Shown here piece by piece: positions 7,379 through 38,006 of a stretch of DNA of 41,279 nucleotides. The stretch is from Monocercomonoides exilis PA203. Taxonomy: Eukaryota; Protista; Preaxostyla. Each line of letters opens with the position of its first letter. The stretch's first letter is position 1. The stretch covers positions 1 through 41,279 of the forward strand of contig LSRY02000086.1 of the NCBI GenBank assembly GCA_001643675.2, read 5' to 3'. A program made the translations under genes and the position numbers. A model generated the notes under the pieces. The model saw nothing but the letters and a program-made list of their open reading frames with translations. It made no database searches and was not told the DNA's origin.

Positions 7379-7439
7379 ATAATTGAATGAAACATCAATG
7401 TACGGAGTGAATAAGGCATTTTGCGAAGAAATCTGTGAT

Positions 7440-10400
7440 TGTTCTGTTTCAGAAGAAAAAAAGGAAGAAGAAGAGGAAGAAGAATTGGAAGGATAAGAAG
7501 AAATTGAAGATGAAACAGAAGAAGGAGAACAAGAAGATGAAAATGCAGAGGAAAAGAGATAAACCTGAGGTATATCATGAGGAGCAAAAGAGTTGGAGTG
7601 ATGAAGATGGAGATGATGACTTCATTTTCGATGAGAAAGATGAAAAAGATGAGAAGAATTGGAAGAAGGAAGGAAGAAATCAGTTGTGGTGTTGTTGGGG
7701 TATTTGTATGAGGAAGAAGGATGGGAATAAATGGAAAAAGAAGAAGTAGAAGCAGAAGAAGAAGATCATAACGAAGATGAAATTCCTGAAATTCCTTGAT
7801 ATTCTCCATGCTTCTTCTGTTTGTTTGCATCATCATTCATTCTGTTTGAAGATAAATTGAAATTCTGCTTGTCTGGAGAAGGAAGAAGATGTGTTTCTTC
7901 TCTTTGAAAAGAGCGATGGGGAAAGGAAAAGATATTGGATTTGAGACGATCAGATGAAGAGGAGGAAGAAGATGATGAGGAAGATGATAAAGAAGAAGAA
8001 GAAGAAGAAGAAGAAGAAGAATTTAATTAAGCAGAAGGAGAAAGAGAAGAAAAGGAAGAAGAAGAAGATAATGAAATATGAAGGGAATCTTGATTTGTAT
8101 TATTTATTGAAGTGACAGAAGAAGAAGAATTTAATGGAGAAGGAGAAGAAGAGGGAGAAAGAGAAAGAGAAGAGGAGGAGGAGGAAGAAGAAATAAAAGA
8201 GAAGGAAGAGAAGGAAGAAGAGAAGAAGAAAGAAAAAGAATAATTCCATTTGAAATTCAAAATTTTAATATAACATTTTGGAAGATGTTTATTTCATTGG
8301 ATGAGAGAGAAAGAGAAAGAGAAGGAGAAGGAGAAGGAGAAGAAGAAGAAGAAGGAGAAGGAGAAGGAGAAGGAGAAAGAGAAGGAGAAAGAGAAAGAGA
8401 AAGAGAAAGGAAGGGAAGGAAAGGAAGAAGAAAAGGAAGAAAGAGAAGAGAAAATTAAAGAAGAAGAAATAAAAGAAGAAGAAGAAGAAGAATATCAAAG
8501 AGGATTTATATTGGAAGATGTGGCAAAGGACAATGAATTATCAAATGAAGAAAGAAGAAAGAAAGAAGGAGAAAGAGAAGAAGAAGGAAACAAAAAAGGA
8601 GAAAGAAAAGAAGAAGAAGAAATAAACAATGAGAAAGAGGAAAATGTTTTGTTTTGTATAAAAACTGGATTTAAACTAGATGAAGATGAAGAAAGTGAAG
8701 AAGCTAACGAGAAAGAAGAGAAAGAAGAGAAAGAGAAAGAAGAGAAAGAGAAAGAAGAGAAAGAAGAAGAAGAAGAGAAAGAGAAAGAAATAAAAGAAGA
8801 ACTAAAAGAGAATAATAATAATAACATCAGTTATGATAAAGAAATGATTGACTGTTATTCAACACCAATGGAATTGATGGAGAGCATAGAAAAGATAGCT
8901 GAAGAGAGGAGGAGGAGGAGAAGAAGGAGAGAGAGAAATATTGAAGATAAACCAATTGAAAAGAAAGAAGAAGAGGAAGAAGAAGAAATGAAGATAGAGA
9001 AGAAGGAAGAGAAGAAGGAAGAGGAGAAAGATGAAATAAAGAAAGAAATGAAGAAAGAAAGTGAAAAAGAAGAAGATAAAAATGAAAAGAAGAAGAAGGA
9101 AAAGAAGGGTAACAACGTCATCAAGAATGAAATAGAATCAACAAAACAAGTTACAAAGAAGAAAATCAAAGAAGAAGAGAAAGAAGAGAAAGAAGAGAAA
9201 GAAGAGAAAAAGGAGAAAGAAGAGGAGATTGAAAAGAAATTGGAGAAATTAGAGAAGTATTTGAAAGAAGAAGAAGAAAACAAAAAGAAGAAAGCGGAAG
9301 AAGAAAGAGAAAGAGAAAGAGAAAGAGAAGAAGAAGAAGAGAAGAAGAAGAAGATAAAAGAGGAGAAGAAAAAGCAAATGATGGAGAGGAAGAAGAAGAT
9401 AATGGAGCAGCAGATGAAGAAAGAGGAAGAGAGGAGGAAGAAAAGAAAAGAAGAAGCAGAAACAAAAGAAAAGAAATTGAAGAAATCCAAAGAAGAAATG
9501 AAGAAATGTATAGAAAACAAAGAGAAGAGCTAGAAATGAAGCTGAAAGAAGAAGAAGAGAAGAAAAGGAGAATTATAGAAGAAAGAAAGAAAGCAATAGA
9601 AGAAGAGAAGAAGAAGAAAGAATTTAGAGAGAAAGAGAAGAAAGAGAATGAGAAGATGAAGAGAATGGAAGATATTTGTGTGGAAAGGATGAAGAAGAGG
9701 AAGAAAAGAGAAGAAGAAAGAAGAGAAGAAGAAGAAAGAAGAAGAATGTTTGAAGAAGAAGCAAGAAGTGCATTAGAGATGGAGAGAAGAAGAAGAAAGG
9801 AAGAAGAGAAGAAGAAGAGAGAAAGAGAAGAAATGAAGAAAGAAGATGAGAATGAGAAGATGAGAAGGAAGAGAGAGAAATGAAGAAGAAAGAAGAAGAA
9901 AAGAAGAAGAAGAAGAAAGAAGAAGAAGAAGAAAGAAAGAGAAGAAAGAGAAGAAGAAGAAGAAGAAGAAGAAGAAGAGAAGAAGAGAAGAAGAGAGAAA
10001 AAGAAGAAAGAAAGAAGAAGAGAGAAGAAGAGAGAAAGAGAAGAGAAGAAGAAGAAGAAGAGAAGGAGAAAAGAGAGAAAGAGAAAGAAGAAGAAGAAGA
10101 GAAGAGAAGAGAAAGAAGAAGAAAGGAAGAAGAAAGAAGAAGAGAAGAAAGAAAGAAGAGGAAGAAGAGGAAGAAGAAAGAAGAGGAAGAAGAGAGGAAG
10201 AAGAAGAAGAGGAAGAAGATGATGAAGAAAATGAGAATAGAAGAATATGAAGAAGAAGAAGAAGAAGATATGAATTGGAAGAAGAAGATGATGATGAAGA
10301 AGAATAGAGAGGAGGAGGAGGGAGGAGGGAGGAGGAGGAGGAGGAGGAGGAGGAGGAGGAAGAAGAAGAAGAAGAAGAAGAAGAAGAAGAAGAAAATGAT

Positions 10401-11335
10401 GAAAGAAAGAAGGAGAAGGAAGAGAAGGAGAAGAAGAAGAAGAAAGTGAAGAAGCAGAATGATTCAGAAGTGAATGAGTTTGATTTTGGGTTTGAAATGA
10501 ATGAAGAAGAAGGAGAAAGAAGAAAGAGAAGAAAGAGAAGAAGAAAAAAAAATACCTGAAATTCCATCATATTCTTCATCAGAAGAAGAAGATAATGAAA
10601 AGAAAATGAATGAAGAAGAAGAAGAAGAAGAAGAGAGAGAAAGAAAAGAAGAGAAAGAGAAAGAGAAAGAGAAAGAGAAAGAGAAAGAAGAAGAAGAAGA
10701 AGAAGAAGAAATGAAGAAGAAGATGAATGGAGAAGGAATAATTGAATATTCGATAGAAGAAATGAAAAAAGAACAAGAAGAAAGAAGAAGAGAAATAAAA
10801 ATGCATTTGAAGAAGAGAAGGAGAAAGAGGAAGAGAAGGAAAAGAAAGAGAAAGAGAAGAAAGAGAAAAGAAGAAAGAATTGAGAGAAAGTTTGAAGAAA
10901 GAAGAAGAAGGAGAAGAAGAAGAGAAGAAGAGAAAGAAGAGGAAGAAGAGGAAGAAGAGGAAGAAGAGGAAGAAGAGGAGGAAGAAGAAGATTTAGAGGA
11001 AGAAGATGATGACATTGAAAATGATGAATATGAATATGAAGAAGAAGAAGAAGAAGAAGATGAATTGAAGAAGAAGAGGATGATGAGGAGGAGGAGGGAG
11101 GAGGGAGGAGGGAGGAGGAGGAGGAGGAGGAGGAGGAGGAGGAGGAAGAGGAAGAAGAAGAAGAAGAAGAAGAAGAAGAAGAAAAGAAGAAGAAGAAGAA
11201 GATGTTGATGGAGTTGAAGAAGAAGAGGAAGAGGAGGAGGAGGAGGAAGAGGAAGTAGTAGTAGTAGTAGAAGAAGAAGAAGAAGAAGAAGAGGAAGAGG
11301 AAGAGGAAGAGGAAGAGGAAGAAGAAGAAGAAGAT
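7440..11335 (+). repeat. ~3.9-kb polypurine low-complexity tract with (GAA)n, (GGA)n and (GAGAAA)n microsatellites
   Basis: The + strand is overwhelmingly A/G, with long uninterrupted purine runs such as 9882-10218. Approximately 10240-10395 is duplicated at 11030-11205. Confidence 0.9.
8301..11208 (+). CDS. Probable Glu/Lys/Arg-rich coiled-coil protein, broken by frameshifts
   Basis: Successive E/K-rich ORFs (8301-9533, 9506-9883, 10501-11208) include non-repetitive islands such as YDKEMIDCYSTPMELMESIEKIAEE. Frame changes fall in microsatellites. Confidence 0.4.
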
Positions 11336-13795
11336 TGGTGGAAGTGAAAGGAGGTTTTGCAAAGAAAGTGATTGAAGTGCATTTGAACATGTTTCATCTG
11401 CTGCTTCTTTCTCCTCATCCGAAGATGATGAAGCGAAAGAGCAAGATATTTGGACATAGCAACATTCAGTTGTTTCACAATCAACTGGCAATGATGACGA
11501 TTAAAAGGAAGATGATATCAAAGATGATGCTAATTCTTGATACTCCGTTCTTTCAGCAGTTGCTCCTTCAAATTGTTCAGATTTGGACGAATAAATTTGG
11601 TCATCCAATGGTCCTTCTAAAGATTCTGAGGTTTTCGTGTTTGCATATCCTTCTCAGCGTCTTCTTCATTCTCTTTCACTCTCACTCTCTTCTTCTTCGT
11701 TTTCTTTTCTGACTTTTTCAAGTTCTTTGTTAATTTCTTTTCTTAATTCCTTTTATAACATCCTTTCATCTGGTTTGATTGCAATTCACCTCAATCTCCC
11801 TCATTTCCTCGACCTCCTTCATCTTCCAAATCATCATTTCACCTCTTCATTTTCTCCTCTTTCTATCCCTTTCGATCTGAGCACTCAACAAAACGAATCA
11901 GAATTCTTGTGATTATTAAAAAATAAGGTTCATCTTTCCCTTTTGCCTCTGGCTCAACAGAACTCTTCATCTGATGTCCAGCCCTTCTTCTGTGTGGATG
12001 AAGACATGTAGAATAGGAAGAAAGCAAACCAAGTGGAAAAGCAGAGAAAAGAGAAGAAGAAGAAGAATGGGTAGGTTGCTGTTTATTCTGTGCCTTTGAA
12101 TGAATACGGAGTTGCAGTTGAGAAAAGCAGAAGAGGGAAAATGAGTTTCTGGAAGCTGAGTAAAATCGAAGTTGGAAATTTGCACAAAGTTGCCTTTTTG
12201 TCACTTTATGAATTAATCAAACGAAAATGCCTCCGTTGCAGTCATTTGTTTCCGTCTTTCATTCGCCTCGCTTTATCTTCTTTTAAGCTGTTTTTCTTTC
12301 TGTTCTCAAAAAGAAATGAGATATTTTCCTTTATATTTTCTGCAGTTGCACCTATTTTCAGCTTGCAATCACGGTGCAGGCGGAGGAACGAACGAATAAT
12401 AAACAGCACTAGCAGATACCAATAAAATTCGCGGTTGATAATAACTTCTGGTATTTTTATAGGAAATTGTATTGCCGTTTAAAAAAATACAGTTGTTGAT
12501 GTAATAGATGCTTCTGCTTTTGCTTCTGCTGTTTCGATCGTGTTGGGAGTGATTTTTCCTGATCGTTCGTTTTGTGTTCTCGTAATCATCGGAATCATCA
12601 CACATGGAGTTTCTTTCTTCTTCCATTTAATCATATTTCATTTCCTTATCTTCTTCATTCATTTCTCCTACTCTTTCTATTTCTCTCCCTTTTCTCAGAG
12701 AAAATTCTTGATCCTTCATCTTCATCTGCAAATTCAGTTGTTCTTCATTTGATCGATTGAACGGCAAATGGGGAGATCTGAACGTAAAACAACACATTGC
12801 TTCAAATTCAGTCGAAATTTTCAATACAAATTGGATAATGCATCAGAGATGATGATATAATGGAATGGGATGTGGAAGAAGAAGACGAAGATTAAGAAGA
12901 AGAAGAAGAAGAAGATATTGAAGTTTCAAATGCCATCTGATATTCAATGTCTGCCTCCTGCTTCAAATGTCCAACAAATTGATTTGCAAATCAAATTGTT
13001 ATTCCATCAGAACATGACAATAATTCTCCAAAAAATGCTCAATGTGAAGAAAGTGCCAAATCCATTTCTGTGAAAGTGACTTGTCTCTCTTTTAGGTTGT
13101 ATCGACTTTCTTGTCTTCTCTGTGTTACTTTTTTATTCTTTAGCCATCTTCTCTTTGTTTCATTCATCTGTGTTGAGTAAAAGGTAATTAACATTTTCCA
13201 AAAAAGAATCTCCAAAAGCAATATCTTTTCGAGCAATGTTCAAAAAAAATGAATTTTTATCAGACAAGCTCAGTTTTCGCTCATTCCGTATCCGAAAAAA
13301 TAGAAAGACGAAGACGATGCAGAAGAAGATTGCCAAATACGGCTGTCAGCAATAAAATATAATGAAGAAGATGAGCAGATATTGTGAATAAATTCCTCTC
13401 TCTGTTGGAGTGGCTCGTAGGGAAGTTGAGCCAAATGAGAAGAAGTCAGCAGCATTTCCAGCAGAATATTCAGCAAAACGAGAATCACCAAAATTAACAG
13501 TGCTATCAGAAAAAACATTTTGTGTGTTGAATGAAACAATCATTGGCCATTGAAATGTTTCATTTGTGTAAGGCTCTCTTGTTGTTCAACAAATCCATAT
13601 CAATAATTTTGTTGAATAATCTGAGGCTGAAAATGAATGATGAATTCATAAAATTTTCCGCTTGAACACGCCTTTATGTATATAATCATTTTTGAAAGTT
13701 ATTGTTCTCCACACAAACAAAAAATATGGAAAAAAAAGTTCTTTATTTGAAAAATAAAAAATATAACGATCAAATCTGGCTTTTGTTTATCAAAA

Positions 13796-16740
13796 ATGAA
13801 TCCTTTCAAAAGAAAACATAACGGAATTGGAAACAAGAGCGTCAAACGGGATGTGAAAAATCTAGAAAATATTTTCGGAAAAATGTCGGAAGACCACGCC
13901 GAACTTGTTCTCACATCATTTTTACAATCTACGGAAAAAGGAAAAAAACTTTTGGAGGCATTGTCCACTTTGAAAACATGTTTGTATTTGTTTAATTATA
14001 AAATACAAAAAAACAATTATTCTAACAACTTTATTTCATTTAAATTTGGATTTTTTTATTTACTACAGCTTTTCCGACAGAACACTACAACGAAATAGAT
14101 CCTCACTCAGATTCAGAAAGCACTGAATCATTTGAAGATTATCCTTTGACAAAATGTGATAATAAAAATAAATATATTCATAAACAACATTTTCTGCAGT
14201 TTCCATTTGTTAAAATTAAATCAACTAAAAATTCACAAATACAACAAGAAAAACAGCTAAGCCTGAGTTCACAACAAATTAGTTCTATCAATTCACAGAC
14301 AATATACAATACATCAATATTTCGCATTCCAAACATCAACAATCCAATTTTAACATCATCATTTATGAATATTGTTCAGTCAGATCCTTCTAATATTCAT
14401 TCAAATACTTCTCCAGCTCCCTCAATGAATATTGTTCAGTCAGATCCTTCTAATATTCATTCAAATACTTCTCCAGCTCCCTCAATGAATATTGTTCAGT
14501 CAGATCCTTCTAATATTCATTCAAATACTTCTCCAGCTCCCTCAATGAATATTGTTCAGTCAGATCCTTCTAATATTCATTCAAATACTTCTCCAGCTCC
14601 CTCAATGAATATTGTTCAGTCAGATCCTTCTAATATTCATTCAAATACTTCTCCAGCTCCCTCAATGAATATTGTTCAGTCAGATCCTTCTAATATTCAT
14701 TCAAATACTTCTCCAGCTCCCTCAATGAATATTGTTCAGTCAGATCCTTCTAATATTCATTCAAATACTTCTCCAGCTCCCTCAATGAATATTGTTCAGT
14801 CAGATCCTTCTAATATTCATTCAAATACTTCTCCAGCTCCCTCAATGAATATTGTTCAGTCAGATCCTTCTAATATTCATTCAAATACTTCTCCAGCTCC
14901 CTCAATGAATATTGTTCAGTCAGATCCTTCTAATATTCATTCAAATACTTCTCCAGCTCCCTCAATGAATATTGTTCAGTCAGATCCTTCTAATATTCAT
15001 TCAAATACTTCTCCAGCTCCCTCAATGAATATTGTTCAGTCAGATCCTTCTAATATTCATTCAAATACTTCTCCAGCTCCCTCAATGAATATTGTTCAGT
15101 CAGATCCTTCTAATATTCATTCAAATACTTCTCCAGCTCCCTCAATGAATATTGTTCAGTCAGATCCTTCTAATATTCATTCAAATACTTCTCCAGCTCC
15201 CTCAATGAATATTGTTCAGTCAGATCCTTCTAATATTCATTCAAATACTTCTCCAGCTCCCTCAATGAATATTGTTCAGTCAGATCCTTCTAATATTCAT
15301 TCAAATACTTCTCCAGCTCCCTCAATGAATATTGTTCAGTCAGATCCTTCTAATATTCATTCAAATACTTCTCCAGCTCCCTCAATGAATATTGTTCAGT
15401 CAGATCCTTCTAATATTCATTCAAATACTTCTCCAGCTCCCTCAATGAATATTGTTCAGTCAGATCCTTCTAATATTCATTCAAATACTTCTCCAGCTCC
15501 CTCAATGAATATTGTTCAGTCAGATCCTTCTAATATTCATTCAAAAACTTCAGTAATTTTGGATTATAGTTTTGAGGATTATTTTATAAATTCTATTGAT
15601 ACTTATGATTATTTTATGAAATGCACATTTCGTCCTAAATTGAAAATAGATAACAAATCCAAATTAAACACAGATTGTATTTATGATAATGCGGAGAGTT
15701 TGAATAAATTGGAGTTGAGTGATAAAGATAGTGATGATGATGAAAATGAATTAATGAGTATATGTGAAGGAAGATCATTGAATAATTTTGGGAAAACATG
15801 TGCTTTCAATTCTTTATGTCAATGTCTTGCTTCATTATGCATTGATAAATGCACAAAAGATAGCAACATTTCCAAAAATCAAAGTTATTTTTTGAATCTT
15901 TTGGAAGAAATTCGGAATCCATCAAAAATAGTGAATGCTTGGGGAAAGAGGAGAATGAAGAATTTTTATGAACTGCTGTTTGGGTGTCTGGATGAACCAA
16001 AAATTTTGACTGACGTGTTTACTGCAGTTATGGAATTCCTATCAAAAAATAATTGGAATTTGAAGGAGATGTTTTTGATCCGCAGCCATAGAATAAATAT
16101 GTGCACCAGCTGCCATCATTTATCTTCATCATTAAGAGGAGCAGGTTATTTTATTTCAATCGCTGGATCAGATATTGTCGGTGGGTTGAATTGTGTGTTT
16201 CAAGCCTCAGATGATTTTGCTGAGAATCTACTTTCAAATTGTGATAACTGCTGGACGAAATCTGCATTTGAAAACTGGATATGGCTTTACGATTTCCCTT
16301 TCATTTTGTGTATTTATCACAAGTTCATTGATGGAGATTATGTGAGTTCTCCTCCAATCAAATTATTCTTCAGAAGTCAAGGAATAGGCCCAAATGATTT
16401 TCATGTGTTCAGTCCTCGTGTGTTATCTTCAATTGACAATCATTCATCTGATAGTGAGATAGTTGCAAAATACAACTTCGTTGGAACAATTATCCATTCT
16501 TCATTGAAGCATAAAGAAGGGCATTTTATTTCAATAGTCAAAAATGGAAGTTCTACTGACCATTCCAATGACAGCTTTCTGCAGTGCGATGATGACAAAA
16601 TTTCAATTATTGACTTCACTAAATGGGACCAATACTGGGATTATCTTTCAGAAGAAAAATGGAATTTTTCAATGAGTTTTTTCAAACTGTTTGAAACAAA
16701 ATACAGAAATAGTTCATCAAAACCCTTCTTGGATAAATGA
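13796..16740 (+). CDS. USP-type ubiquitin carboxyl-terminal hydrolase (peptidase C19)-like protein with N-terminal 20-aa tandem repeats; two exons (13796-13979, 14069-16740)
   Basis: Cys box SLNNFGKTCAFNSLCQCL (Cys codon 15799-15801), two CxxC pairs (CTSC, CDNC), His box YNFVGTIIH...EGHFISIVK (His 16522-16524) and QCDDDKIS. Removing the phase-1 intron joins ORF 13796 in frame to ORF 14146 with no stops. Confidence 0.85.
13980..14068 (+). other. Spliceosomal intron, 89 nt, phase 1
   Basis: GTTTGT...TACTACAG, very AT-rich; excision restores the reading frame. Confidence 0.75.
14365..15551 (+). repeat. Coding minisatellite: 19 identical 60-bp units plus a partial 20th, encoding MNIVQSDPSNIHSNTSPAPS
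   Basis: The unit ATGAATATTGTTCAGTCAGATCCTTCTAATATTCATTCAAATACTTCTCCAGCTCCCTCA repeats with an exact 60-nt period and no spacers. Confidence 0.98.
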
Positions 16741-17281: not shown

Positions 17282-19207
17282 TTGTCAAATGCCCCTATCG
17301 TTCATGTTGGAACTGAAAATAAAAGAAAAACACTCGGAAGATTGAATTTATTAGATTTGAACAGTCATCTCTTTGAGTGTGCGAATGGAATGATTCTAAT
17401 TGAGGAAGTGATTTGGATGGTGCACTTTATGTTCATTCACTGCATGTTCAAGAAATGTGAATAATGGAGCGTTATTCTGTCAAAATTTGTTGAAAATCTC
17501 TCTCGAAAAATCCAATTTTTCATGTTATCAAGCGAGGAATGGAGGAGCAGTTGAAGTGTATGCTCCACAATCAAATTCCAAATATCACATTTTGGAAAAT
17601 AAAGTCGAAAGTTATTCAATAACATGCTGGTGTGGAATTGGTTGGTATTTTGTACAACAAACAATTCCTGCAAATGGTAAATTCCTGTTTTCCAAATGCA
17701 AGTTCATCTCAAATACAGGTGGTGATTCTGCTGGTTCTTTCACATTCAATTGGCCTCCACAAAATAAACCAAAACAATGCTTGCTCCAAGAGTGCCAGTT
17801 CATAAATAACAAAGTCGAAAATCCAACTACCTATGGTGGTGCTGCGTTGTGTTGAACAAGAACATATGATTGGATGAATGGAATGAAATTCATCACTTTC
17901 TGTTTCTTCAATGAAATACAGCTACTAACGGAAGAGGAAATGATGTGTTTTTCAATGGTAATTCCATAACTCAATCTCCGTTTGAGAATTGCGGATCAAC
18001 AACCCCAACAAAAAAAGTGCGGAACAACAACACAGCTGATAATGAGACTGTCAACAGCTCGCTCCCTCTCATAAGCCAGAACAAAAATGTTGCAAACAAC
18101 GGAACAGATGTTGATGGCTGTGGAAGAACGCAACAGAATCGTTGCTCCACTATGGAGTATGCAATCTATGGCTTATTCTTTTAAAAGAGGCTTCCCTCAC
18201 CCTCCTCAGCTCAACATTTGCTCCCACTCAAACACTTATCTTCCTTGCTTTTGACACATAAATCAAAGGAAATGGCACAGATACCATCACCATCGCATCA
18301 AGCGGAATTCTTCAATCATCATCTTTTTTTTCAGCCATTTCTGCACTCTACCGACAGACTCAGGGCTCCCTCACAGTCTCTGCCCTCACCGTCACCCACA
18401 ACTCCACAAATCAAATCACCCCCATCCTCTTCCACCTCTCCGAAAACTCCCCTTCCCTCAACCTCAACACAACCGCCATCACCGGAACAACACCATCTTC
18501 ATCATCAATCAAAACTCCCCTCTTCTTCCTCACTGCTGGCTCCCTCGCCCTCAACCACACAGCAATCACAAAACTCACACTTAACAACTCCAGCATCCCC
18601 ACATCACCTCCACAGCCACCCCCACCAGCTGTGTCCTCTCCTCTGCCACCTCCCCTGCCCTCTCCCTCTCCCTCGCCAACTGCACCATGACCAGCATCAA
18701 TTCAGAACAGTTGAGCCAACAAACTCCCACCAATGGCGGGGCATCTCATTCGCGTCATCTGCACCTGCCAACTCGTTTTCAGTGAGCAACACCACCTTCT
18801 CCGACTGTTGTGTGAGTGAGGATACAAGTTCTGGAGGAAGAGGCGGTGCTCTCATGATCGAGTTCAATGAAGGCTCACAAGTGTCAGAATCCTCCTTTGC
18901 CATCACCAATATCGTGTTTTCAGCCAACAAGGCCTGTGTCGGAAGAGATATGTATTTTGTGTGTGAATCATTTGTCGCTTCTGTGAAAGAGCCCTTGTTC
19001 ACTTTCATGACAAGCATCACTCAGAAAGACAATTCGGCTGTTGGACATGACAGAACAGAAGCAATTGGAATTTCGATTTATAAATCTTTATCAACAGGCA
19101 TACAGCTGACAATGAATACGTGGAAAACATGTTTGGTGTCAAAGCAATGTATTTCTGGCTATCAAAGATGCCCTGCAAGTGCACACGCAATGCGACGGGG
19201 CTTCTGA
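17282..19207 (+). pseudogene. Decayed member of a GGA-repeat (parallel beta-helix-like) putative surface protein family
   Basis: Motifs NGGAVEV, YGGAALC, GRGGALMI, FSANKACVGRDMYF and VANNGTDVDGCG...CSTMEYAI are spread over several frames with stops. Confidence 0.65.
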
Positions 19208-22200
19208 AGAAGGTGAAGAACGTTGGTAAATAATAATAAACGTGCAGACAAATTGTGAATTTGTGCGCGCAATAGAAAAACCGAAGAAAGTTGTGGAGAT
19301 GGCACACAAAATTGAAGAAAACTGCTCGTATGCGCATGTGATGAAATCAACATAACTTGTCGGACATGTATTCTCTTCTTTTATAGAATTATCTGTTAAA
19401 TATGCCTTTTCATCAAAATTGCTTTCACTCATCGTTTCATCTTCTCAGACATGTTGAAGGCATGTGGCCTTGCGAAATCTCTCGAAAATTATCCCTGCAA
19501 CTGTTTGTTCAAAGAAATCTTTTCCCACCTTGCTCCTTCTTCTTCCTGTTATTCTTTCAATCTCAAAATAAATTTTGTAGAGGCAACCTTCATGGATTGT
19601 GTGCCCGATGATCGACTATTCTTGATTTGACATTGTAGCATTTCATTTGTAAAATAATTTTTAAAGATATTCCTTGATAGAATAAATATTTCTTTCGTCT
19701 ATCTGAGTAGGAATGAAAGGTGATGCTTGGCCCTGGATTTAACGGGAGTTGAATGAAATGGAAATAGGAATATTTTTAATTCGTTCATCGAAGAAGATGT
19801 TGAAGAAGAAGAATGCATAGGAGAATGAATGTTGTGTGTGGAAAATGTCTGTCTGAGAAATTAAAGCTTTCAGATCGTATTTCTCAGAATGAGAATGTTT
19901 TCATTGGCTTATTTTGGAATTCATAAAAAGATGACGATAAGCTGAAGGAATTAAATAGCAAGGAAAAGAGGCAGATAAAGAAGGAAGAAGATGAAGTTGC
20001 AAAAATAGTTGAAGGAGTTGAAAAAGAAATAATAAGAAAAAGATGATGACGAGGAGGAAGAAGAAGATTATGAAAGCTATGAAGGTGGAGCAATTGAGAA
20101 TTGTGAAACGCATTCAATCCTTTTAATAAAGATGTTGAAAATGACTTGAATGATGTCGACCGATAAAAACACATTATTCGATGAGTTGATTTCAGATGAA
20201 ATAGACAATCTTTATCACAAAATATGTGAAAGGGAAAGAGATACAAACAGATGAAGAATGAAGTCCACAAATCGTTGATTGCCTATGAGTGGTTGAACTG
20301 CTTTGTCCCTCACAAAAAGAAAATTGTGTTTGTCCGTTGGTGTTCATAATTCAAACGAACGAAACGTCTGATGAGGATATTGGCAGAGAATAATTCGAAA
20401 TCGAAGAAGGCGTTGACAATTGATGAAGTTGACTTCAATTGCAAAAATTTCAAATGAAATAAGAAGAAAATGACGAATTTTATGATTATGTGATTGATGT
20501 GTCGATTCTGGCAATGAGCATCTTTTATTGAAGTGAGACTGTTGAGAATGATAGCGAAGGTGAAGAAAAATAGAAGATGTCAGGTTTTTCAAGTCACGTT
20601 GGGCGATAGAAAAAACTGAATGTGTTCTGAATGTGAATGACCATCCAGCTTATCAGCCCAGATAAAAGAGTCGCAACTGCAAAACATTCCGAACAAAAAT
20701 GCCAAATAAACTGCTTTTCTCTTTCTTGCAAACTCATGTTAAGCATTGTCAGGCTATGCAGCATGCAAAACAGATGGTAAGAAACGAATGACTTCGTTGA
20801 ATGCAATCCAAACAAGAATCATCTCAAAACTTCTGGATCTTTTGCAAAGGATTTCAGGGCTTCCCTCTCTTTGTGGTATTCCTGTACTTGATCAATTTGT
20901 ATTCATTGAAAGAACACCTTAAAAGAAAAATGAATGAAATAAAAGAAAATCAAACCATTTTTTTTTCTTGAAATATTTTCCTATCTCCAACTCACTCGAA
21001 ATGATCAGCCCACCTGGCTTTCTTGCAATATAAAATTTCCTCTTGCCACAAAAAATTCAGACAACTGGACAATAAATGGCTGGAATAGAAAGTCATTGAA
21101 AGCACAGAATCCATTGTGAAACGAGCTGTAATATCAGATTAAAACACATAATTCTTAAATAAACAAGAAATCAACTCTTTTTCAAAGACTTATTTAACGC
21201 CATTTCTTTGCTGATAGCTTTCCAACGGGTTTCGCGTAAATGGCGATGCGTTTGTCGTTAAGACCAGCTGAGTGTTTCGCTCTGTTCGCTTCCTCCATTG
21301 TCCTATGCTTCAATTCCCTTTCCTTTTCCACAAAGAAAATCTTCTCCCAAATAAAAAATCACGCAAAATAAGTCCTGAGCATAAGATATACCAAGTACAC
21401 AACATTTCGCTCGAAATGAACAAGCTGTTCATTTCAACTTTTCTAACATTTTAATCGCTTTTTTTGTATCTTGCTTTATTCATTTTTCATTCAAAATATC
21501 ACAGCCGATGTTGCATCATGTATTTTGCAACATATAACTTGATTCAAACTTCATGCAACTTCCCTCATCAATTCACTTTTTGGAAGCAATCGATGCAAAC
21601 AGCCACCCGCTCCTCCATTTGAAGGCTAAATCCCTGTTCTTCTTCAATGCTATAACTCGCATGAGTGCATCTGTGTTTGCGCTCAATAGTAGCTCAAATA
21701 TGCTCAGGCTGCTGCAAATAATTTATCAAAAATCTTCACTAATAAAATTATAGGTTGCAGACCCTTATTAAATAACCAAACAATAAATGAATGTTTTGTT
21801 GCCCTTCGTCTTGCCTGTTTTGAGGTAAAAGAATGAAAATGATGCAGAGGAAAAAGTTTATGAATGTGCATCTTCAGGTATTTTAATCGATATTTGTGAC
21901 TCTTTTGAAGTAGATGTTCCTTCAACATTCAGAAAATGAACCAATATGTTGCTTCATCTTGATTTTTCCGAAGGCAGCAGGACCAGTAACAAATGTTTTA
22001 TGGTGTGCATGGGGCATTACTGAATCACTGCTTATGCGATTTTATCTGTTCTTTTTTTATTATTATGAAATAAATAAATTTTTTATTGACTTTTGAAAGG
22101 GGCTTGGGCGATTGAACGATTTGAGGGACCTGGAGCAAAAAGAGAAAAGCGAAGAAATGGATGAAATATGGGAAGATGTGAGATTTGAAGAGACGGGTGC

Positions 22201-23765: not shown

Positions 23766-24200
23766 AATGTGAATATGGTTTTTCATTTCATAAAATGCAT
23801 TTTTATTTAATCATAAAAAAAATATTGAATATATACATATATATTTTTAAGACTCAATAAAATACAAAAACCAAAAAAAAGTCACCATTTCATGAAAATA
23901 TGTCAAATTGAAAATCTCGATCACAAAAGTGGTCACTAATTTTTCTTCAGATTTTGCAACAAACAGACATAAAAAGATGTGGGGAAGCGGTTTGTGCGGA
24001 AATCTGAGAAAAAATTAGTGACCACTTTTGTGATCGCCAGTCATTTTGAAAAACACTTTTATTAAGGTTCTCATCAGATTTGATCCGTTGAACGATCGGA
24101 ACTATTATAAAACTGAAACTTGAAATGACTGGCGATCACAAAAGTGGTCACTAATTTTTCTTCAGATTTTGCAACAAACCGCTTCCCCACATCTTTTTAT
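23766..24200 (+). repeat. Left terminal inverted repeat (its internal palindrome continues to 24281)
   Basis: Reverse complement of 29491-29917; differences are mostly homopolymer lengths, with one substitution seen near the outer end. Confidence 0.95.
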
Positions 24201-24560
24201 GTCTGTTTGTTGCAAAATCTGAAGAAAAATTAGTGACCACTTTTGTGATCGAGATTTTCAATTTGACATATTTTCATGAAAATTTTCGTATAGAAATATT
24301 TATTTATTATTTATATTTTTTTTCATATATTTGTTTATGATTTATTGTTATTATGTTATTATAATTAGTTTTAATGAGAAACATTTATGCGTTGATTTTT
24401 GGAAAAAGACAAAAAATAGTGATATCAGTTTCCAATATCAATTCATCATTTTAATAAAATCAAATTGCATAAATACTTATTTTTTGTGTGAAACATGGTG
24501 TTTTTCACCGAAAAAGAAATGTGACTTTTGTTCCATAATAAATTCAGAAAAATATAAACA

Positions 24561-27500
24561 ATGAATATTTCCAAACCTCAATCGACTCTATATTCTCGAT
24601 GCAAAGTATTATGGAATGAAATTAAGCGCATCGGCGGAGATGACGTGGATTCGTTACTTGCCTATTTGTTTTATTCTTACAGGCAATCAACTTCTGTAAT
24701 TAACGATTTACTGAAGACATTGAACGGTTTGATTTTTTATTTATTCATGTTTTATATAGAAAATTTCATGAACTGTCATTGTTGTTATTTTCTTAACTAT
24801 TAATTCAATATTTTTCTCATGAACAGAATATCACATAAAGCTGCTGGAAGACCTGTCTGTGGTGTACAACAACGCTCCTTTGCACACTCAGACAGTAATG
24901 CTGCAAGCGCTGTCACGCAACACATCATTATCCGATTTACAAGACTATGGATATGATGTCACAGAGGGAAAATTTATTTACGCGAAGCAAACGCTGAAGA
25001 AAAACCAAGGATTTATCATCACTCCTCTAAAACCTCATCTTCCGTCTTGCAAAAGTGGTTTGTTTTTATTTGAATTTTTTTGAATAATTTTCTCTGTTCA
25101 TTTTAGGCTTAAATGAACAGGATTGGGAAAAGGGCAACAACTGGATGTTGGCCCATTCAACTGAAGCATCCACTTCTCTTCAATCAGCAAAGAAAAAGCA
25201 GCGAGCTGAGCCAGATTACGCCAGATATATTGACGAAGCAGCTTGGGAAAATGAAATTGTTACAGAAAATTCTTCTTCAAAGAAAAAGAAATCTTCATTA
25301 TCAGAAAAATCACATCAACAAAATAAAAAATCAAGTTCTATTTCGGAAAAAAATTCATCTGCATCAACTTTTTCATCGTCTGAAGCTATTGATGCTCCAA
25401 TCAACACCCCAATAAGGAGAGAAAGGAGGTCAACAAAAAATAAAAAGAATAATTCAAATCACAAACGTCACTCTTCTCCATCTCCAATACCAATTCACAA
25501 ATTCTTCAAAACAAAACAATCGTCAACATATTCTTCTTCTTCTCCTCTTCCTCCTTGTTCTCCTTCTTCTTCTCCTCCTCCTCCTTCTTCTTCTTTTTCT
25601 TCTTTTTCTTCTTCTTCATCTTCTTCCTCTTCTTCAAATTCTTCTTCTTCAAATTCTTCTTCTTCTTCAAATTCTTCTTCTTCAAATTCTTCTTCTTCAA
25701 ATTCTTCTTCAAATTCTTCTTCAAATTCTTCTTCTTCTTCTTCTTCTTCTTCTTCCTCCTCCTCCTTTCTTCTTCTTATTCTTCATCTTCCCCATTTTTA
25801 TCTTCATCTTCTTCCTCTTCATCCAAAAAGCAACAAAAAATGACAATCAATTCTTCATTAACTTGCAATTCTTCTTCATATTTAAGAAATGAAAATGATT
25901 GGGTGAGCAAGCAATTGCTTGAATATGTCACTTCTCCCACTCTTGTTCCTCCACAGGCATTTCAAGATCTTCTATCTTCATTTGCAAAAGACAGCAACAC
26001 TTCTCCATCTCCACAAAACACTCATTCAGACGAAAGTTATAATTCAAATTGTAAAAATAATATGAATATCATTTCAAATAATTACACAATGGATTTTCTT
26101 CCTGAAATTCAATCTCATTCTCCATCAATTTCTTCAAGTGTCAAAACCACTTCAATCGCTTCATCAAAAACAAAGAAAGGATTAAAAATCTTGGAAATAC
26201 TTGCTATCTTGCCTCTCTCCTTCAATGTATATCTTCAATCACTTCACAAAAACAATCAATAATTAAAACCATTTCATTTCAAAACAATTTATCTTCTCGA
26301 GTATTGAGTGTTTGTCAACAACTTACCAAAGATGGAATGACAGTGCGTTCATGGGTCCCATCACTGATCAACAAATGGGAAGACTTTTGTGGATATAGAA
26401 GCAGACAGCAACAAAATGTCATCGAGGCGTTTGACAATCTTCACCAACTTCTTCAAAAAAATGAGTTAATAAACAAGGATACCTTCAATCCTGTTTTAAT
26501 CACACATTTCAAATGCCAAAAATGTCAAAAATCACATCACACTTCAATGAAATTTGTGACAATGTCGTTATCAATTCTTCTTCTCCTCACAACGGCCTAT
26601 CTTCTCTTTTTGCGACTGAAGTTTTAAACGAAAAGAATTGTGTTTATTGCGATGAATGCAAGGAAAAATGCTGTGCTGCGAGATGGGAGGAAATGGCTGC
26701 ATTTCCAGAGGTGCTAGCCCTCTGTCATGAATGCACTGATTCTGCTAGTTCAGCACCTTCGAGAACATTACTAATGGAAACAGACAGAGTCAATCAGCGC
26801 ACGTTTTGTAAAGGATTTTCTTCTAAAGATATTCAACATCTTCAAAAAGATAATCAAGAAACAATCATATATCATTTTTCTGGACAAATACTATTCAAAC
26901 GTCTGGATCAACAAAACGGACATTACATCGCAGTTGTGAAAAGAAAAAGTGGAATCAATAGTTTTTGGAATATTTGCAATGATGAAAGTGTTTCTGAATT
27001 CGATAGTGACAAATGGAGTTCTTCATGGAAAGATCTTTATGTTCAAGGCTACGTTCCTTCACTTTCATTCTACATCAAGGAAAAAACAAAACCAACACTG
27101 TCAACTCTTCAATTTGGTGGTTCATCATCTTCTTCAGAAACATCAAATAATAACACTTCAAATAACTCATCATCATCGTCAACAACAACAACTGCTACGT
27201 CATCTGCATTCATCACACCACCTCATCGAACAACTTCCATTCCTCCACTCTCTTCGTCAATTTCAACAAGTTATGGATTGGAAGCACTGAAAGAAAAACG
27301 AAAGAAAACGGGCATCTTTTCTCCCAACGAAAAGAGATTAATCTTCAAGCCCAAGACGAAATTATGGAAAGAGTTTACAGAAGAAACAAATATCAAAATT
27401 TCTTTCCCACTTCTACAAACTGACATCAAACTTCTCGAAAGCGAAAAGGCGTACTGATCTGTGTGGAATGTGTGAGAAGTTGAGCTATTTGGAGAATAAA

Positions 27501-28571
27501 CTCAAATCTTCACAAAACAAAAATGGACTTTCTTCTGCTGAATTTCACACACTCAAACTTCTTCGTCAACATCGACTAGTTGCAGAAATGCAACGAAAAC
27601 ATTATCAATCAACAGTCGACAATCTGAAAGAGGGAGAAGCAGTCTTCGTCTTCGACTTTAAAGAAAAATGGAAACTCCCTATCAGAAAAAATCAACTTCA
27701 ACAGGAATTCTTCAATTATCAACAAGTTTCTCAATTCACAATCATCTCTCTTCAAAAAATAAATAATCAACTTGAAAAACGAACATTCAACTTCTTCTCC
27801 GACTGCCTCTCAAATGATCACAGATTTGTCATTGAGTGTCTGGAATCTGTGATCAAAAGGCACTTCTTCTCAGACACTCACACTTTTAAGTTCTTCTGCG
27901 ATTCGGTACCACACAACCGAAATCGCTTCCTTCTTCACTTCATCCTCTCCAAACAATCGAAACTTCTCAAAAAGAAAAATACTCAACTCAACTTCTTCGC
28001 TGAGCACCATGGAAAAAATATCTGTGATAGTGAATTTGGTGCGTTAGTGAATGCAATCGACAACAATCTTTCGACTGAACACATCACCACACTTCATGAT
28101 TTGATCAACTTCTTCGAAAACAATATGAACACTTCGACATCAGCTTCTTCAACTTCACAATCAAACATTTTCTCAACATCATCATCGAACTCTTCACCAT
28201 CTTCAACATCTGTCAATAACTTTGAGCATGAGAGGTACTTTGAAGAGTATGTACCATCTCAGCAAATCTCATGGCCGTCATTGTCAGTCCCTCACATGAA
28301 GGACTACTTATATTTTGAGCGCAAGGGCTCATTTGTCTCTGCTTCAGCTGTTGGATATCTTCCTCAACGCTCTCTGGTTGCCCTCGAATCTTCAACAATG
28401 AAAGAAAAAGTTCAAAGATCAAGAAAGTCATTTCACTCTGATATCACATCATCTAACTCTTCTCTTCTTTCTCAATCTTCTCAAGATCTTCTTTCAAGGA
28501 GATTTGAGCTTCTTCTTGACTCTTCTTCTTTTAATGAATCTCAAAATTGTTCTTTTGGTGTCCCTTATTAA
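24561..28571 (+). CDS. Transposase with an inserted USP (peptidase C19) domain; exons 24561-24726, 24827-25057, 25107-28571; four frame breaks (about 25768, 26188, 26545, 27406)
   Basis: USP part: GLK[N]LGNTCYLASLLQC (Cys 26202-26204), QQQNVIEAF, CQKC/CDEC, GHYIAVVK (His 26921-26923), WNICND. Transposase part: HFYKL...TDLCGMC, then VFVFDFKEK (D 27654), FFCDSVPH (D 27900) and FFAEHHGKNICDSEFG (D 28026). The stitched path has no premature stop. Confidence 0.85.
24727..24826 (+). other. Intron 1 of the transposase gene, 100 nt, phase 1
   Basis: GTTTGA...GAACAG; excision joins ORF 24561 to ORF 24859 in frame. Confidence 0.8.
25058..25106 (+). other. Intron 2 of the transposase gene, 49 nt, phase 1
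   Basis: GTTTGT...TTTTAG; excision joins ORF 24859 to ORF 25145 in frame. Confidence 0.8.
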
Positions 28572-28575
28572 GAAA

Positions 28576-28713
28576 CTAGTTGTTGTGTATGCTTAGCTGG
28601 CACTCTATCGGAAGGGTGCTGGACATGACTGTTCGTATTAGATATTGCAGCCCGAAGGCTGCAATATCCGGACCTGGATACGACGAACAGCCTCCCAGGT
28701 GCACAACAGTTAG
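28576..28713 (+). ncRNA. Candidate structured RNA element directly 3' of the transposase stop codon (family unknown)
   Basis: Hand-folded helices: 28576-28590/28699-28713 (15 bp, 4 G-U), 28597-28606/28613-28622 (10 bp, 3 G-U), 28629-28636/28683-28690 (8 bp) and 28641-28652/28657-28668 (perfect 12 bp, CGAA loop). Locally GC-rich. Confidence 0.55.
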
Positions 28714-29490: not shown

Positions 29491-29917
29491 ATAAAGATGT
29501 GGGAAGCGGTTTGTTGCAAATCTGAAGAAAATTAGTGACCACTTTTGTGATCGCCAGTCATTTCAAGTTTCAGTTTTATAATAGTTCCGATCGTTCAACG
29601 GATCAAATCTGATGAGAACCTTAATAAAAGTGTTTTTCAAAATGACTGGCGATCACAAAAGTGGTCACTAATTTTTCTCAGATTTCCGCACAAACCGCTT
29701 CCCCACATCTTTTATGTCTGTTTGTTGCAAAATCTGAAGAAAAATTAGTGACCACTTTTGTGATCGAGATTTTCAATTTGACATATTTTCATGAAATGGT
29801 GACTTTTTTTGGTTTTTGTATTTTATTGAGTCTTAAAAATATATATGTATATATTCAATATTTTTTTTATGATTAAATAAAAATGCATTTTATGAAATGA
29901 ATAACCATATTCACATT
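29491..29917 (-). repeat. Right terminal inverted repeat
   Basis: Reverse complement of 23766-24200. 29467-29492 is a collapsed remnant of the inner palindrome arm. Confidence 0.95.
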
Positions 29918-35200: not shown

Positions 35201-35781
35201 GAAAAGGAACAGGGAAAGGATCGCTTCTGCTGTTTCAGAAGGAGAAATGGACAAGAACATTCAGTCAGAGCAGCGTGCCTGGAAGAAGAGATGCACTGTC
35301 GAAGCTGTTTTCTTTGCTGTCGTTATCAAAATTTGAGTCTTTCTTCACGTTGAAGAAGAATTCAATGGCAATGGATCTGATGCAGAAATAACCTGCCCTC
35401 AATTCGGTTGCGCCTTTTGATTCAGCTGCTGATCTTGCTGTAAATACAAACATTGCTCTTCATCCTCTTTCTCATTGCGCCTCTTCACTTGTCGATTCAT
35501 CCTTTTTAATGAACATCCAACTTCAATCTTCTCCTTCTCTCAGAACATCTTTATCTCCTTCACTGCAGTCCCAAGCTAAACTTCCATCTTCTACTAGTCT
35601 TGCTGATCCTGGCTCTCTTTCTCTACTCTCACGTCCTGCTCTATTTTCGTCTCCTTCTCTTTCATTCAGCTCCCGTCAAATTCATCATCAGGCCTCATCT
35701 TTTATTTTCTTTTCCGAAACGCAAAAGGATTATATATTCTATAACGAAATATCAGCTGAAATTATATGTCAATGGAAGTGA
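32201..35781 (+). pseudogene. Long fragmented S-rich/EK-rich hypothetical protein gene
   Basis: Run of + strand ORFs (32201, 32530, 33574, 33817, 34396, 34834, 35146, 35509), several separated by single in-frame stops (e.g. 33814-33816). Confidence 0.45.
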
Positions 35782-36392
35782 TTCAATATCAAACCAAGAA
35801 TAGCCGATCATTGGGTGCACAATCTTTAAAGATCGAATCTGACATTTTTCATTTGGAAGTTGAAAGAATTCTCAGAAAACAGAAAGATCAAGGCAGAAGA
35901 CAATATTTGGAATTAATGATTATATGGATGATCTTCGAGAGATCGCATTATAACATGCACCTTCAGTGAGCAATTGAAGATGAAACAGAGAAAGAAAGCA
36001 ATTTTGAAGAAAAGGCATATTTGAAGGATAATTCTATGAGATGAGAGCTTCGAAAGCCAACAGGCAAGTTGGAATCAGTGAAACAAAAGAAACAGATATT
36101 TTTGAAGAGCTTGTTGATATGCTTGAAGAAATGCATGTTGAAGAGAAAAATAGTGATTCCTTAGGAAACAAGTGGAATTTGCATTTGATGAAAAGGAGAA
36201 AATAGAAGAGGAAATATCGAAGAAATATTTATATTTGAGCTGACGTTAAGTATTTTGGTAAAATTAAGTGATATGTTCTTCAGTTGAAGAAGCGATGAAG
36301 TCTCATGTATTTTTCTATGACATGGAAAATGGCGAAAATGAGAAAATGAAGGAAAGGAAAGAACGTAAGAAAAAGTTTATCATTTCCAGTGA

Positions 36393-36689
36393 TTATGGTG
36401 TCAACTGCGCTGAAAGTGAGAGGTTGAGTTGGAACAAATGTTGAGGAAAGGAGGGTGAGGGAGGCGTCTTGGAGGAGGGAATGAAGCCGTTGAGGGCAAA
36501 CTCGATGGATGCGCATGGGGTCTGTTGGGGTCTGCCACAGGCATCAGCATCGACATAACTTCCACCATTTGCAACGACTTTATTCTGGTCGATGAGGGGG
36601 AGCAAGCTATTGAACTCAGCTTTTCTAATTATCCACGATTTCGTTGAACGGTTGATGAAGCAATTGAACCGAATTAAAGGAAAGGACAT
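36393..36689 (-). pseudogene. Fragment paralogous to the 17.9-18.3-kb part of the beta-helix-like surface protein family
   Basis: LPLIDQNKVVANGGSYVDADACGRPQQTPCASIEFAL aligns with LPLISQNKNVANNGTDVDGCGRTQQNRCSTMEYAI. Confidence 0.75.
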
Positions 36690-37068
36690 TTGTTAGCTGT
36701 TCAAAGACGAAAAGAAAAAAGAGAAATAACTATTATTAGTAAATTGGTTTCAATAATTTTGTTTTCTTATCGTTTTTTCGTTCTTATTTTAAATTTTTTC
36801 TTTTCAATGTTTTGTTTTTTCAGTTTAGAAATATCTATTTTCCTTTTAAAGATTGATTTTTCTTTTTTTTTTTGAAACTTGATCAAAAAACTCTTTTTAA
36901 TGAAAAAAAGGTATGTTTTTTTGTTCTTATAAATTTTACAAATATATATGACAGAAATAAATGCTAAATACTTGCAAAAACAAATTAACTCTTTGATCAA
37001 TAAATACCACTATAGATTTATTTTTCAATTTTTGATCTTTTTTATGATATCAAAAAAATCACCCATAT

Positions 37069-38006
37069 GACCTGACTTTAATTTGTGTACCATGTCTTTT
37101 GAAAGTTTCATTAAAGAAAGGTGAAGGCGTGGAAATTCAATTGGAAGTGGAAGTGGCTTTACTGGCTTTGAGCAATATTTTTTAAGTGTATGTTAATTTT
37201 TATTTCATTTTTGAAGTTATTGATTTTTCCGATTTTTATTAGGAAGTGCCAAAAGAACTGTATTTGAATGAAATCAAAGAGATAATCCAATATCATCAAG
37301 AGCATCACAACCTCACTCGACTTGCCTATCAATCTTCTTGGAATTTTTGATTTTCAGATTGGTCAATGATGAAAGCTTGGATGAAGTGATTGTGAATGAA
37401 CTGCATTTCGCAAGAGAAGCATCAAGAGAATTGGAAGAATTGTCGAAATGTGTGGATTGGAAGAGAAAAGAAGAAGAAATGTGCAAATAAGAAGCGAATG
37501 GAGTGCAAGTTATTAAGGGATGGATGAAAACATTGGTGTGCTTCTATGAAAACTGTCTGTTGTGGAATGAAGAATATGTTGGACTTTTAAGCAGCATTGT
37601 TCGGATATATCGAACAGCGAAGGATAAATTCAGAGAAATTAGCTGCTGGTGTGTTTTTTCCTTGAGAAATGCAGCGAGTGACGGAGCTGTACCAGTTGAT
37701 GACTTGCTGAAAAGTGGAGCAGTTGATGCTGTTTTGGAGAAGATTCTGCAACAAACATTAAATAAAGATTTTATGCGTGATTATTTGGATTTCTTTTTGA
37801 AGATTTCAGAAAGACAAAAAGACGAGGAGAAAGACAAACTGAAGGAAGCGAAAAGAAAAGAGTTGAAAAGAAAGATATTTGAAGAGCTTGAAGAAGAAGG
37901 ATACGAGGATATCATCACAAGTTTTCATGGAACTTTTTGTTTTCTGAGCAGAATACACTATCTTTTTTTGTCGTTGGATGTTTCAGTTTATTTTGTAAAC
38001 GTTTAG
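37069..38006 (+). pseudogene. 5'-truncated, disrupted copy of the EExGYED multicopy family, with an intron at about 37188-37242
   Basis: Reads ICVPCLLKVSLKK...VALLALSNI, a GTATGT...TAG intron, then EVPKELYLNEIKEIIQYHQEHHNLTRLAYQS. A frameshift near 37345 and an in-frame TAA near 37488 precede the intact C-terminal ORF 37503-38006. Confidence 0.75.

Follow-up and report, generated by a model that had tools for sequence, protein, structure and literature searches.

The window analysed here is the whole of a 41,279-nucleotide (nt) stretch of the Monocercomonoides exilis PA203 genome (contig LSRY02000086.1). On its forward strand, at 24561-28571, lies a transposase gene that carries a ubiquitin-specific protease (USP, peptidase C19) domain within its coding sequence, and the locus, which is broken in the assembly, belongs to a family of giant Sola2 transposons present in many copies in this organism. 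Exon 1 (24561-24726) has an ATG and a GT donor that are kept across copies. It is followed by intron 1 (24727-24826; GT-AG, 100 nt), exon 2 (24827-25057) and intron 2 (25058-25106; GT-AG, 49 nt), and the splice sites of both introns are likewise kept. Exon 2 encodes the Sola2 N-terminal domain and is the top window match (E 1.4e-6) of a profile built from the N-terminal parts of Sola2 proteins from outside Monocercomonoides. Exon 3 opens with a Ser/Asn-rich linker of variable length (25107-26170), after which come the USP domain (26171-27080), a Ser/Thr linker (27081-27320) and the Sola2 core (27321-28571), which comprises a CxxC..H motif, the catalytic Asp residues (27654, 27900 and 28026) and a C-terminal region.

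A preliminary description of this gene had listed the USP and core motifs, and all of them were found in place. The Cys box of the USP lies at 26187-26207, QQ at 26406, GHY at 26915-26929 and W..CND at 26966-26983; the catalytic residues are Cys 26202, His 26921 and Asn-Asp 26978-26983, and there are two CxxC pairs. The core motifs are DLCGMC (27456), DFKEK (27654), CDSVPH (27897) and HGKNICD (28008), with a spacing of exactly D-81-D-41-D. The two GT-AG introns proposed in the same description held as well: their ends are kept in 14 copies, the intron interiors diverge, and the phase arithmetic leads into the correct frame of exon 3. The exons sum to 3862 nt, or ~1,287 codons, compared with the ~1,290 amino acids (aa) estimated earlier. 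The four frame breaks bridged for that estimate are present, one near 25744-25767 in the exon 3 linker, two (26184 and 26527) in the USP domain and one (27401) in the core.

The core had been called Sola-like, and it can be assigned specifically to Sola2. The search with the core resulted in 627 relatives at E<=0.001. One of these, P0095 from Heterostelium album PN500 (E 8.3e-17, 30% identity), has a sequence that matches the Sola2_PPa-1 transposase (PMC3627910, supplementary file 3). An alignment of 78 homologues shows no variation in the three Asp residues or the HGK motif. The AlphaFold2 (AF2) model of the core, with a predicted local distance difference test (pLDDT) score of 87.6, matched Mos1 (Z 11.4, root-mean-square deviation 3.4 over 183 residues), the PFV integrase (Z 12.2) and also the Metnase core; the RNase H-like fold that had been expected was thus recovered in the model at Z 11-12 with Mos1 and integrase cores. 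Pfam and PDB sequence searches with the core returned nothing, except DUF7869 on some homologues, and the Sola2 class was therefore taken from the homologues and the fold. By homology and by model, the core is a Sola2 transposase with a DDD triad in an RNase H fold.

The genome (82.3 Mb, 101 contigs) was searched for further copies, and the genome-wide counts for core and USP are lower bounds. Near-identical copies of the core number more than 100, with more distant families in addition; for the USP domain there were at least 129 matches. From 25 fetched loci of family 1, 18 hold the Cys box, the His box and the three Asp motifs in a single frame of 1052-1296 aa without stops. The identical domain order recurs in one frame (923-1429 aa) at four loci belonging to three diverged families, whose cores are 42-61% and whose USPs are 21-36% identical to family 1. 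Naturally intact copies lie, for example, on contigs C24 and C63. The single polypeptide with USP and DDD parts, reconstructed by bridging in the preliminary description, is therefore found as a natural unbroken frame in these 18 and 4 loci, and the intact open reading frames to be sought elsewhere in the genome exist at 22 other loci. In addition, the public gene models MONOS_16548 and MONOS_16737 cover the USP and reach into the beginning of the transposase part. The domain order in the transposase is Sola2 N-terminal domain, flexible linker, complete USP, linker and DDD core. Because exon 2 matches the Sola2 N-terminal profile, the USP is, on sequence grounds, an internal insertion between that domain and the core and not an appended domain. 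We regard this architecture, together with the Sola2 identity, as nearly certain.

The fusion was not found outside M. exilis: it was absent from the 150 best core homologues, from the surroundings of 10 metagenomic USP loci and from viral contigs, searches that are weak for intron-containing eukaryotic genes, and Pfam UCH matched none of the 86 long homologues scanned. One Sola2 homologue of another organism (P0012, at L062) has an OTU-like Cys/His motif at residues ~280-460, in the same position upstream of the core. An OTU domain in this protein was unconfirmed by Pfam and PDB.

The fused domain was scored with Pfam UCH at 31.7 bits on the window piece, above the gathering cut-off of 23.9 bits, and at 45.5 and 58.2 bits on intact siblings; the scan did not pick up two of four full-length frames. 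A profile of this USP family, compared with solved USPs, gave USP34 as best match (E 1.9e-22) with the whole domain aligned. When aligned to USP34 and USP21, the Cys and His boxes contain the catalytic Cys, His and Asn/Asp and the oxyanion Asn, which agrees with the C19 assignment made earlier. The catalytic Cys/His/Asp and four zinc cysteines are invariant across the families; of 29 loci, all have the Cys box and 26 have the His..ND motif. Cellular and giant-virus USPs (PF00443; USP34, USP21; Nucleocytoviricota UCH) share with the fused domain the Cys box, QQ box, zinc-ribbon fingers and His box, in this order over ~305 aa, but the similarity is distant, and paralogues carried by elements of this same genome are the nearest relatives. 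A single-sequence search resulted in no homologue of the fused USP outside M. exilis. In the ESM Atlas, the clusters closest to the fused USP are giant-virus UCH proteins, some of which carry Peptidase_C98; as a pointer to the donor of the USP, they are only a lead.

Over 18 intact copies, the pooled ratio of nonsynonymous to synonymous substitution (dN/dS) was 0.20 in the USP, at a mean dS of 0.74, and 0.04 in the core; the pairwise counts are non-independent and the copies recombine. Judged from these ratios, the USP is under purifying selection; its catalytic residues are kept by selection. The copies L002 and L003 have an identical USP and a core dS of 0.28, a contrast indicating recombination between copies within the gene. 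A USP with a Cys-His-Asn/Asp triad cleaves the isopeptide bond after the ubiquitin C-terminus. The fused domain has what cleavage of ubiquitin conjugates needs, and this activity is predicted for it.

The preliminary description covered 24561-28571; this span holds only the gene, but the element is ~35 kb long and has a second USP. The true ends are 1941 and 37064, of the GGGTGATTTT type. The left terminus (1941-1966, forward strand) is an imperfect terminal inverted repeat (TIR) at which many copies start, with flanks that differ between copies, and the right terminus (37039-37064, reverse strand) is an imperfect TIR at which homology to other copies ends. The TIRs are ~26 bp long and both ends read GGGTGATTTTTTT. 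Twenty ends from other loci share this terminus and have unrelated flanks; two of them have a changed base in the terminal motif. The target-site flanks of the window copy are ATGT on the left (1937-1940) and ATAT on the right (37065-37068), with one mismatch, as also occurs in the copy on contig C33. The 4-bp duplications are perfect in three of five two-ended copies (ATAT, AAAT and ATGT). The original Sola paper reportedly gives a 5'-GRG terminus; the element ends read GGG, which would fit it, and the published PPa-1 element does not start with GRG. The element spans in the family range from 18 to 36 kb. DDD cores of the RNase H fold bind the ends of their element and move it by cut-and-paste, and such mobility is predicted here from the dispersed copies with differing flanks and from the target duplications. 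The 4-bp AT-rich duplications agree with those that characterize Sola2 (PMC3627910).

An internal inverted repeat of 431 bp (98% identical) surrounds the transposase gene. Its left arm (23766-24196, forward strand) overlaps a palindrome at 23888-24281, and its right arm is at 29493-29917 (reverse strand). These repeats were considered as the TIRs of a foldback-type element and rejected, as there is no duplication at 23766/29917 and homology runs on to 1941 and 37064; they are internal because the flanks beyond them are common to other copies. In the copy on contig C8, the gene cassette is inverted relative to the repeat arms, and in those on C33, C80, C17 and C53 the arms are joined and the cassette is gone. 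From these arrangements, the internal repeat is a rearrangement site. The internal repeats (window 23766-24281 and 29493-29917; L007; L021) differ between subfamilies and are near-identical within a copy, and the L021 repeat, 1755 bp or longer, is 99.9% identical.

Immediately outside the left end (1919-1940), as also in contig C66, part of the terminal motif is repeated. This suggests that the element inserted beside or within another end, or that a short stretch was duplicated in tandem. The end of C66 matches window positions 1200-23800 at 98-99%. Because this match extends into the flank outside the element, the 41-kb window contig may be redundant with the C66 locus or an allele of it. 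Diverged repeats (~70%) occur outside and inside the element (5-957 versus 37696-38004; 18051-19758 versus 35660-36613), and they are probably other repeat families or nested insertions. The region 7400-11700 is a long GAA-rich, Glu/Lys-coding low-complexity tract common to other copies, and no Pfam domain was found in its scanned frames.

The second USP is encoded by a stand-alone gene at 14044-16740 (forward strand), in which a 20-aa tandem repeat of ~21 copies precedes the domain (Cys box 15787, GHF 16516, CDD 16582). Its frame (14044-16737) scored 34.1 bits with Pfam UCH, and hhalign (99.3%) relates it to the fused USP as a distant paralogue. Both the Cys box (FGKTCA) and the QQ box (no QQ) are altered. 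In total, 40 of 59 copies of the stand-alone USP lie within 15 kb of a transposase core, compared with ~5% expected by chance. On contig C80, a related frame reaches 5878 aa.

Directly after the stop codon of the transposase, at 28576-28713 (forward strand), is a structured RNA-like element, stable in folding (z -4.7), with a three-way junction, a probable pseudoknot and covariation. The sense strand of most copies has a cUUCGg loop. Each of the four families has the same layout immediately 3' of the gene (other loci L026:6134-6263, L027:1470-1594 on the reverse strand, L028:4866-5005 and L029:1215-1352 on the reverse strand), and this layout ends in an invariant CCUCCCAGG; in the fourth family it follows the presumed last exon. 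Among only seven related sequences, four of the seven pairs of the central helix vary in both partners, and pairing holds in 96% of cells. All seven could form a 5-bp pseudoknot, in which the variation is one-sided only. The search against Rfam gave no match. The comparison points to a covarying RNA that is probably pseudoknotted; a role as ribozyme, 3'-end signal or recoding signal is an idea only. Two USP-less metagenomic Sola2 genes also have stable three-way folds after the stop (L060:2100-2240 and L064:1990-2105; z -5.7 and -3.9) with similar junction words (CUAG, GCUUAG, CCCAGGG/CCCGGGG). The small covariance model R1 did not detect these two RNAs, and the likeness is by eye only.

As to the role of the fused USP, the preliminary description had suggested removal of ubiquitin from the transposase itself or from target chromatin as an anti-silencing device. 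The reading we favor, at a probability of roughly 0.45, is that of a tethered deubiquitinase protecting its transposase. Because the USP is tethered to the transposase, we infer that it would act in cis on this protein or on the transpososome, where it would strip ubiquitin chains added by the host and so delay proteasomal turnover or extraction from DNA. Restriction of a transposon protein by host ubiquitination is described for TRIM41 acting on L1 ORF2p (PMC10716122).

Several observations count against protection in cis. The single-sequence model of the USP has a pLDDT of 36.6, too low for the fold or the triad geometry. Evolution of the USP is about fivefold faster than that of the core, as would fit either a relaxed constraint or host substrates that change. 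The separate, untethered USP is also present in many elements, and cis action is therefore not the only mode of the family. In the window copy and L002 only, Val replaces the Gly beside the second catalytic Asp, a position at which nearly all other copies have Gly. Finally, the window gene as assembled contains its four frame breaks. L002, a 99%-identical sibling on another contig, lacks all four and has indels of its own elsewhere; the breaks all fall within homopolymer or simple-repeat runs, and multi-copy regions of the M. exilis nanopore assembly are incompletely polished (PMC8767320). Due to these three points, assembly error is the likelier cause of the breaks.

The alternative that survives best, although we think it rather unlikely, is an active deubiquitinase directed at other proteins near the element. 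The transposase would bring the USP to chromatin, where deubiquitination of histones or repair factors would lift silencing or steer the repair of excision breaks. The fusion to a DNA-binding protein fits this idea, and the second, untethered USP in the same elements fits targets in trans. The closest solved relatives include the chromatin-acting USP21, USP12/46 and Ubp8; such matches are general, however, as the PDB matches cover the whole USP family and give no indication of specificity.

A protease of C19 fold with a non-ubiquitin target appears improbable. It would be an isopeptidase of SUMO/NEDD8 type, such as USPL1, or a protease that processes its own long precursor and sets the core free. 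Transposons more commonly carry SUMO proteases, and the strong divergence of the fused USP from cellular USPs, its lack of a homologue outside M. exilis in the single-sequence search, the Peptidase_C98 in part of the nearest ESM clusters and the long low-complexity linkers on both sides could all be read in this way. However, the QQ box and the zinc-ribbon fingers typical of ubiquitin-binding USPs are retained, and no conserved cleavage-site motif was seen in the linkers.

Still less credible is a captured passenger or a non-catalytic ubiquitin-binding module, kept only through its in-frame place in an essential gene. Any in-frame insertion must remain stop-free regardless of use, the USP has a higher dN/dS than the core, and Sola2 relatives without the USP exist; nevertheless, a ratio of 0.20 is far below neutral, and the catalytic Cys/His/Asp and zinc cysteines stay invariant between families that are only 21-36% identical in the USP. 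That the fusion is an artefact of assembly or reading, with USP and transposase genes merely adjacent, is close to inconceivable: the window copy does require four frame changes, but the natural single frames with both domains at 22 other loci refute it at the DNA level, and the MONOS_16548 and MONOS_16737 models spanning from the USP into the transposase start, as well as the Sola2 N-terminal domain upstream of the USP, also stand against it.

A wider arrangement can be proposed tentatively, and we consider it possible but doubtful. In this Sola2 lineage, an active fused USP and a free USP would form a dedicated counter-ubiquitin system that shields the transpososome or reopens silenced chromatin, so that elements of up to 36 kb could pass 100 copies. 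The transposase mRNA would end in a pseudoknotted RNA of a class not yet described, which might be catalytic or serve as a recoding or 3'-end signal and would be shared with USP-less Sola2 elements of other organisms.

Unclassified repeats make up 35% of the M. exilis genome (PMC8767320), and the Sola2 family explains part of them. The family also adds a conserved RNA structure without an Rfam family. Intact copies occur naturally, the catalytic residues are conserved and relatives without a USP can serve as controls, so that a single Cys-to-Ala change would test whether ubiquitin added by the host restricts cut-and-paste transposition.

Several transposon superfamilies have independently acquired proteases that remove ubiquitin or SUMO. 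The Ulp1- or OTU-bearing cut-and-paste elements include Mutator/Kaonashi, Zisupton, CACTA and Ginger. As in M. exilis, a ubiquitin/SUMO-type cysteine isopeptidase travels with a DDE/D transposase in these elements; however, their proteases belong to other families (C48 or OTU) and the elements themselves to other superfamilies, whereas the M. exilis protease is a C19 domain nested between two parts of the transposase.

The Sola2 elements of dictyostelids (PPa-1 and DFa-2; PMC3627910) have a DDD core and N-terminal domain homologous to those of the M. exilis elements. Both groups are large, cargo-carrying elements with short imperfect TIRs and 4-bp AT-rich duplications, of which ATAT and AAAT also occur in M. 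exilis. The published dictyostelid elements are 10-15 kb long and carry Fanzor1 as cargo, whereas the M. exilis elements span 18-36 kb, two to three times more than the Sola2-Fanzor elements compared, and contain one USP inside the transposase and a second one besides.

The preliminary description had not recognized the architecture from any known element. This part stands, as no report of a USP inside a DDE/D transposase was found in the literature, a search that lay outside Repbase, Dfam and the original Sola paper. Its list of known transposon proteases was incomplete, however, since Helitron2 elements carry UCH (HELIANO, PMC11417382), and Helitron-like elements are reported to carry UCH, OTU and Ulp1 domains stably (PMC11417382). 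Like the M. exilis element, Helitron2 with UCH is a eukaryotic DNA transposon with a stably captured UCH/USP. It encodes a rolling-circle RepHel and has neither a DDD core nor TIRs, whereas the M. exilis element has a DDD/RNase H core, TIRs and 4-bp duplications; because the transposases are unrelated, the two captures are independent. Capture of a USP by a DNA transposon is thus already known and the M. exilis elements are not a new class; what appears to be new is a C19 USP nested in a Sola2 transposase.

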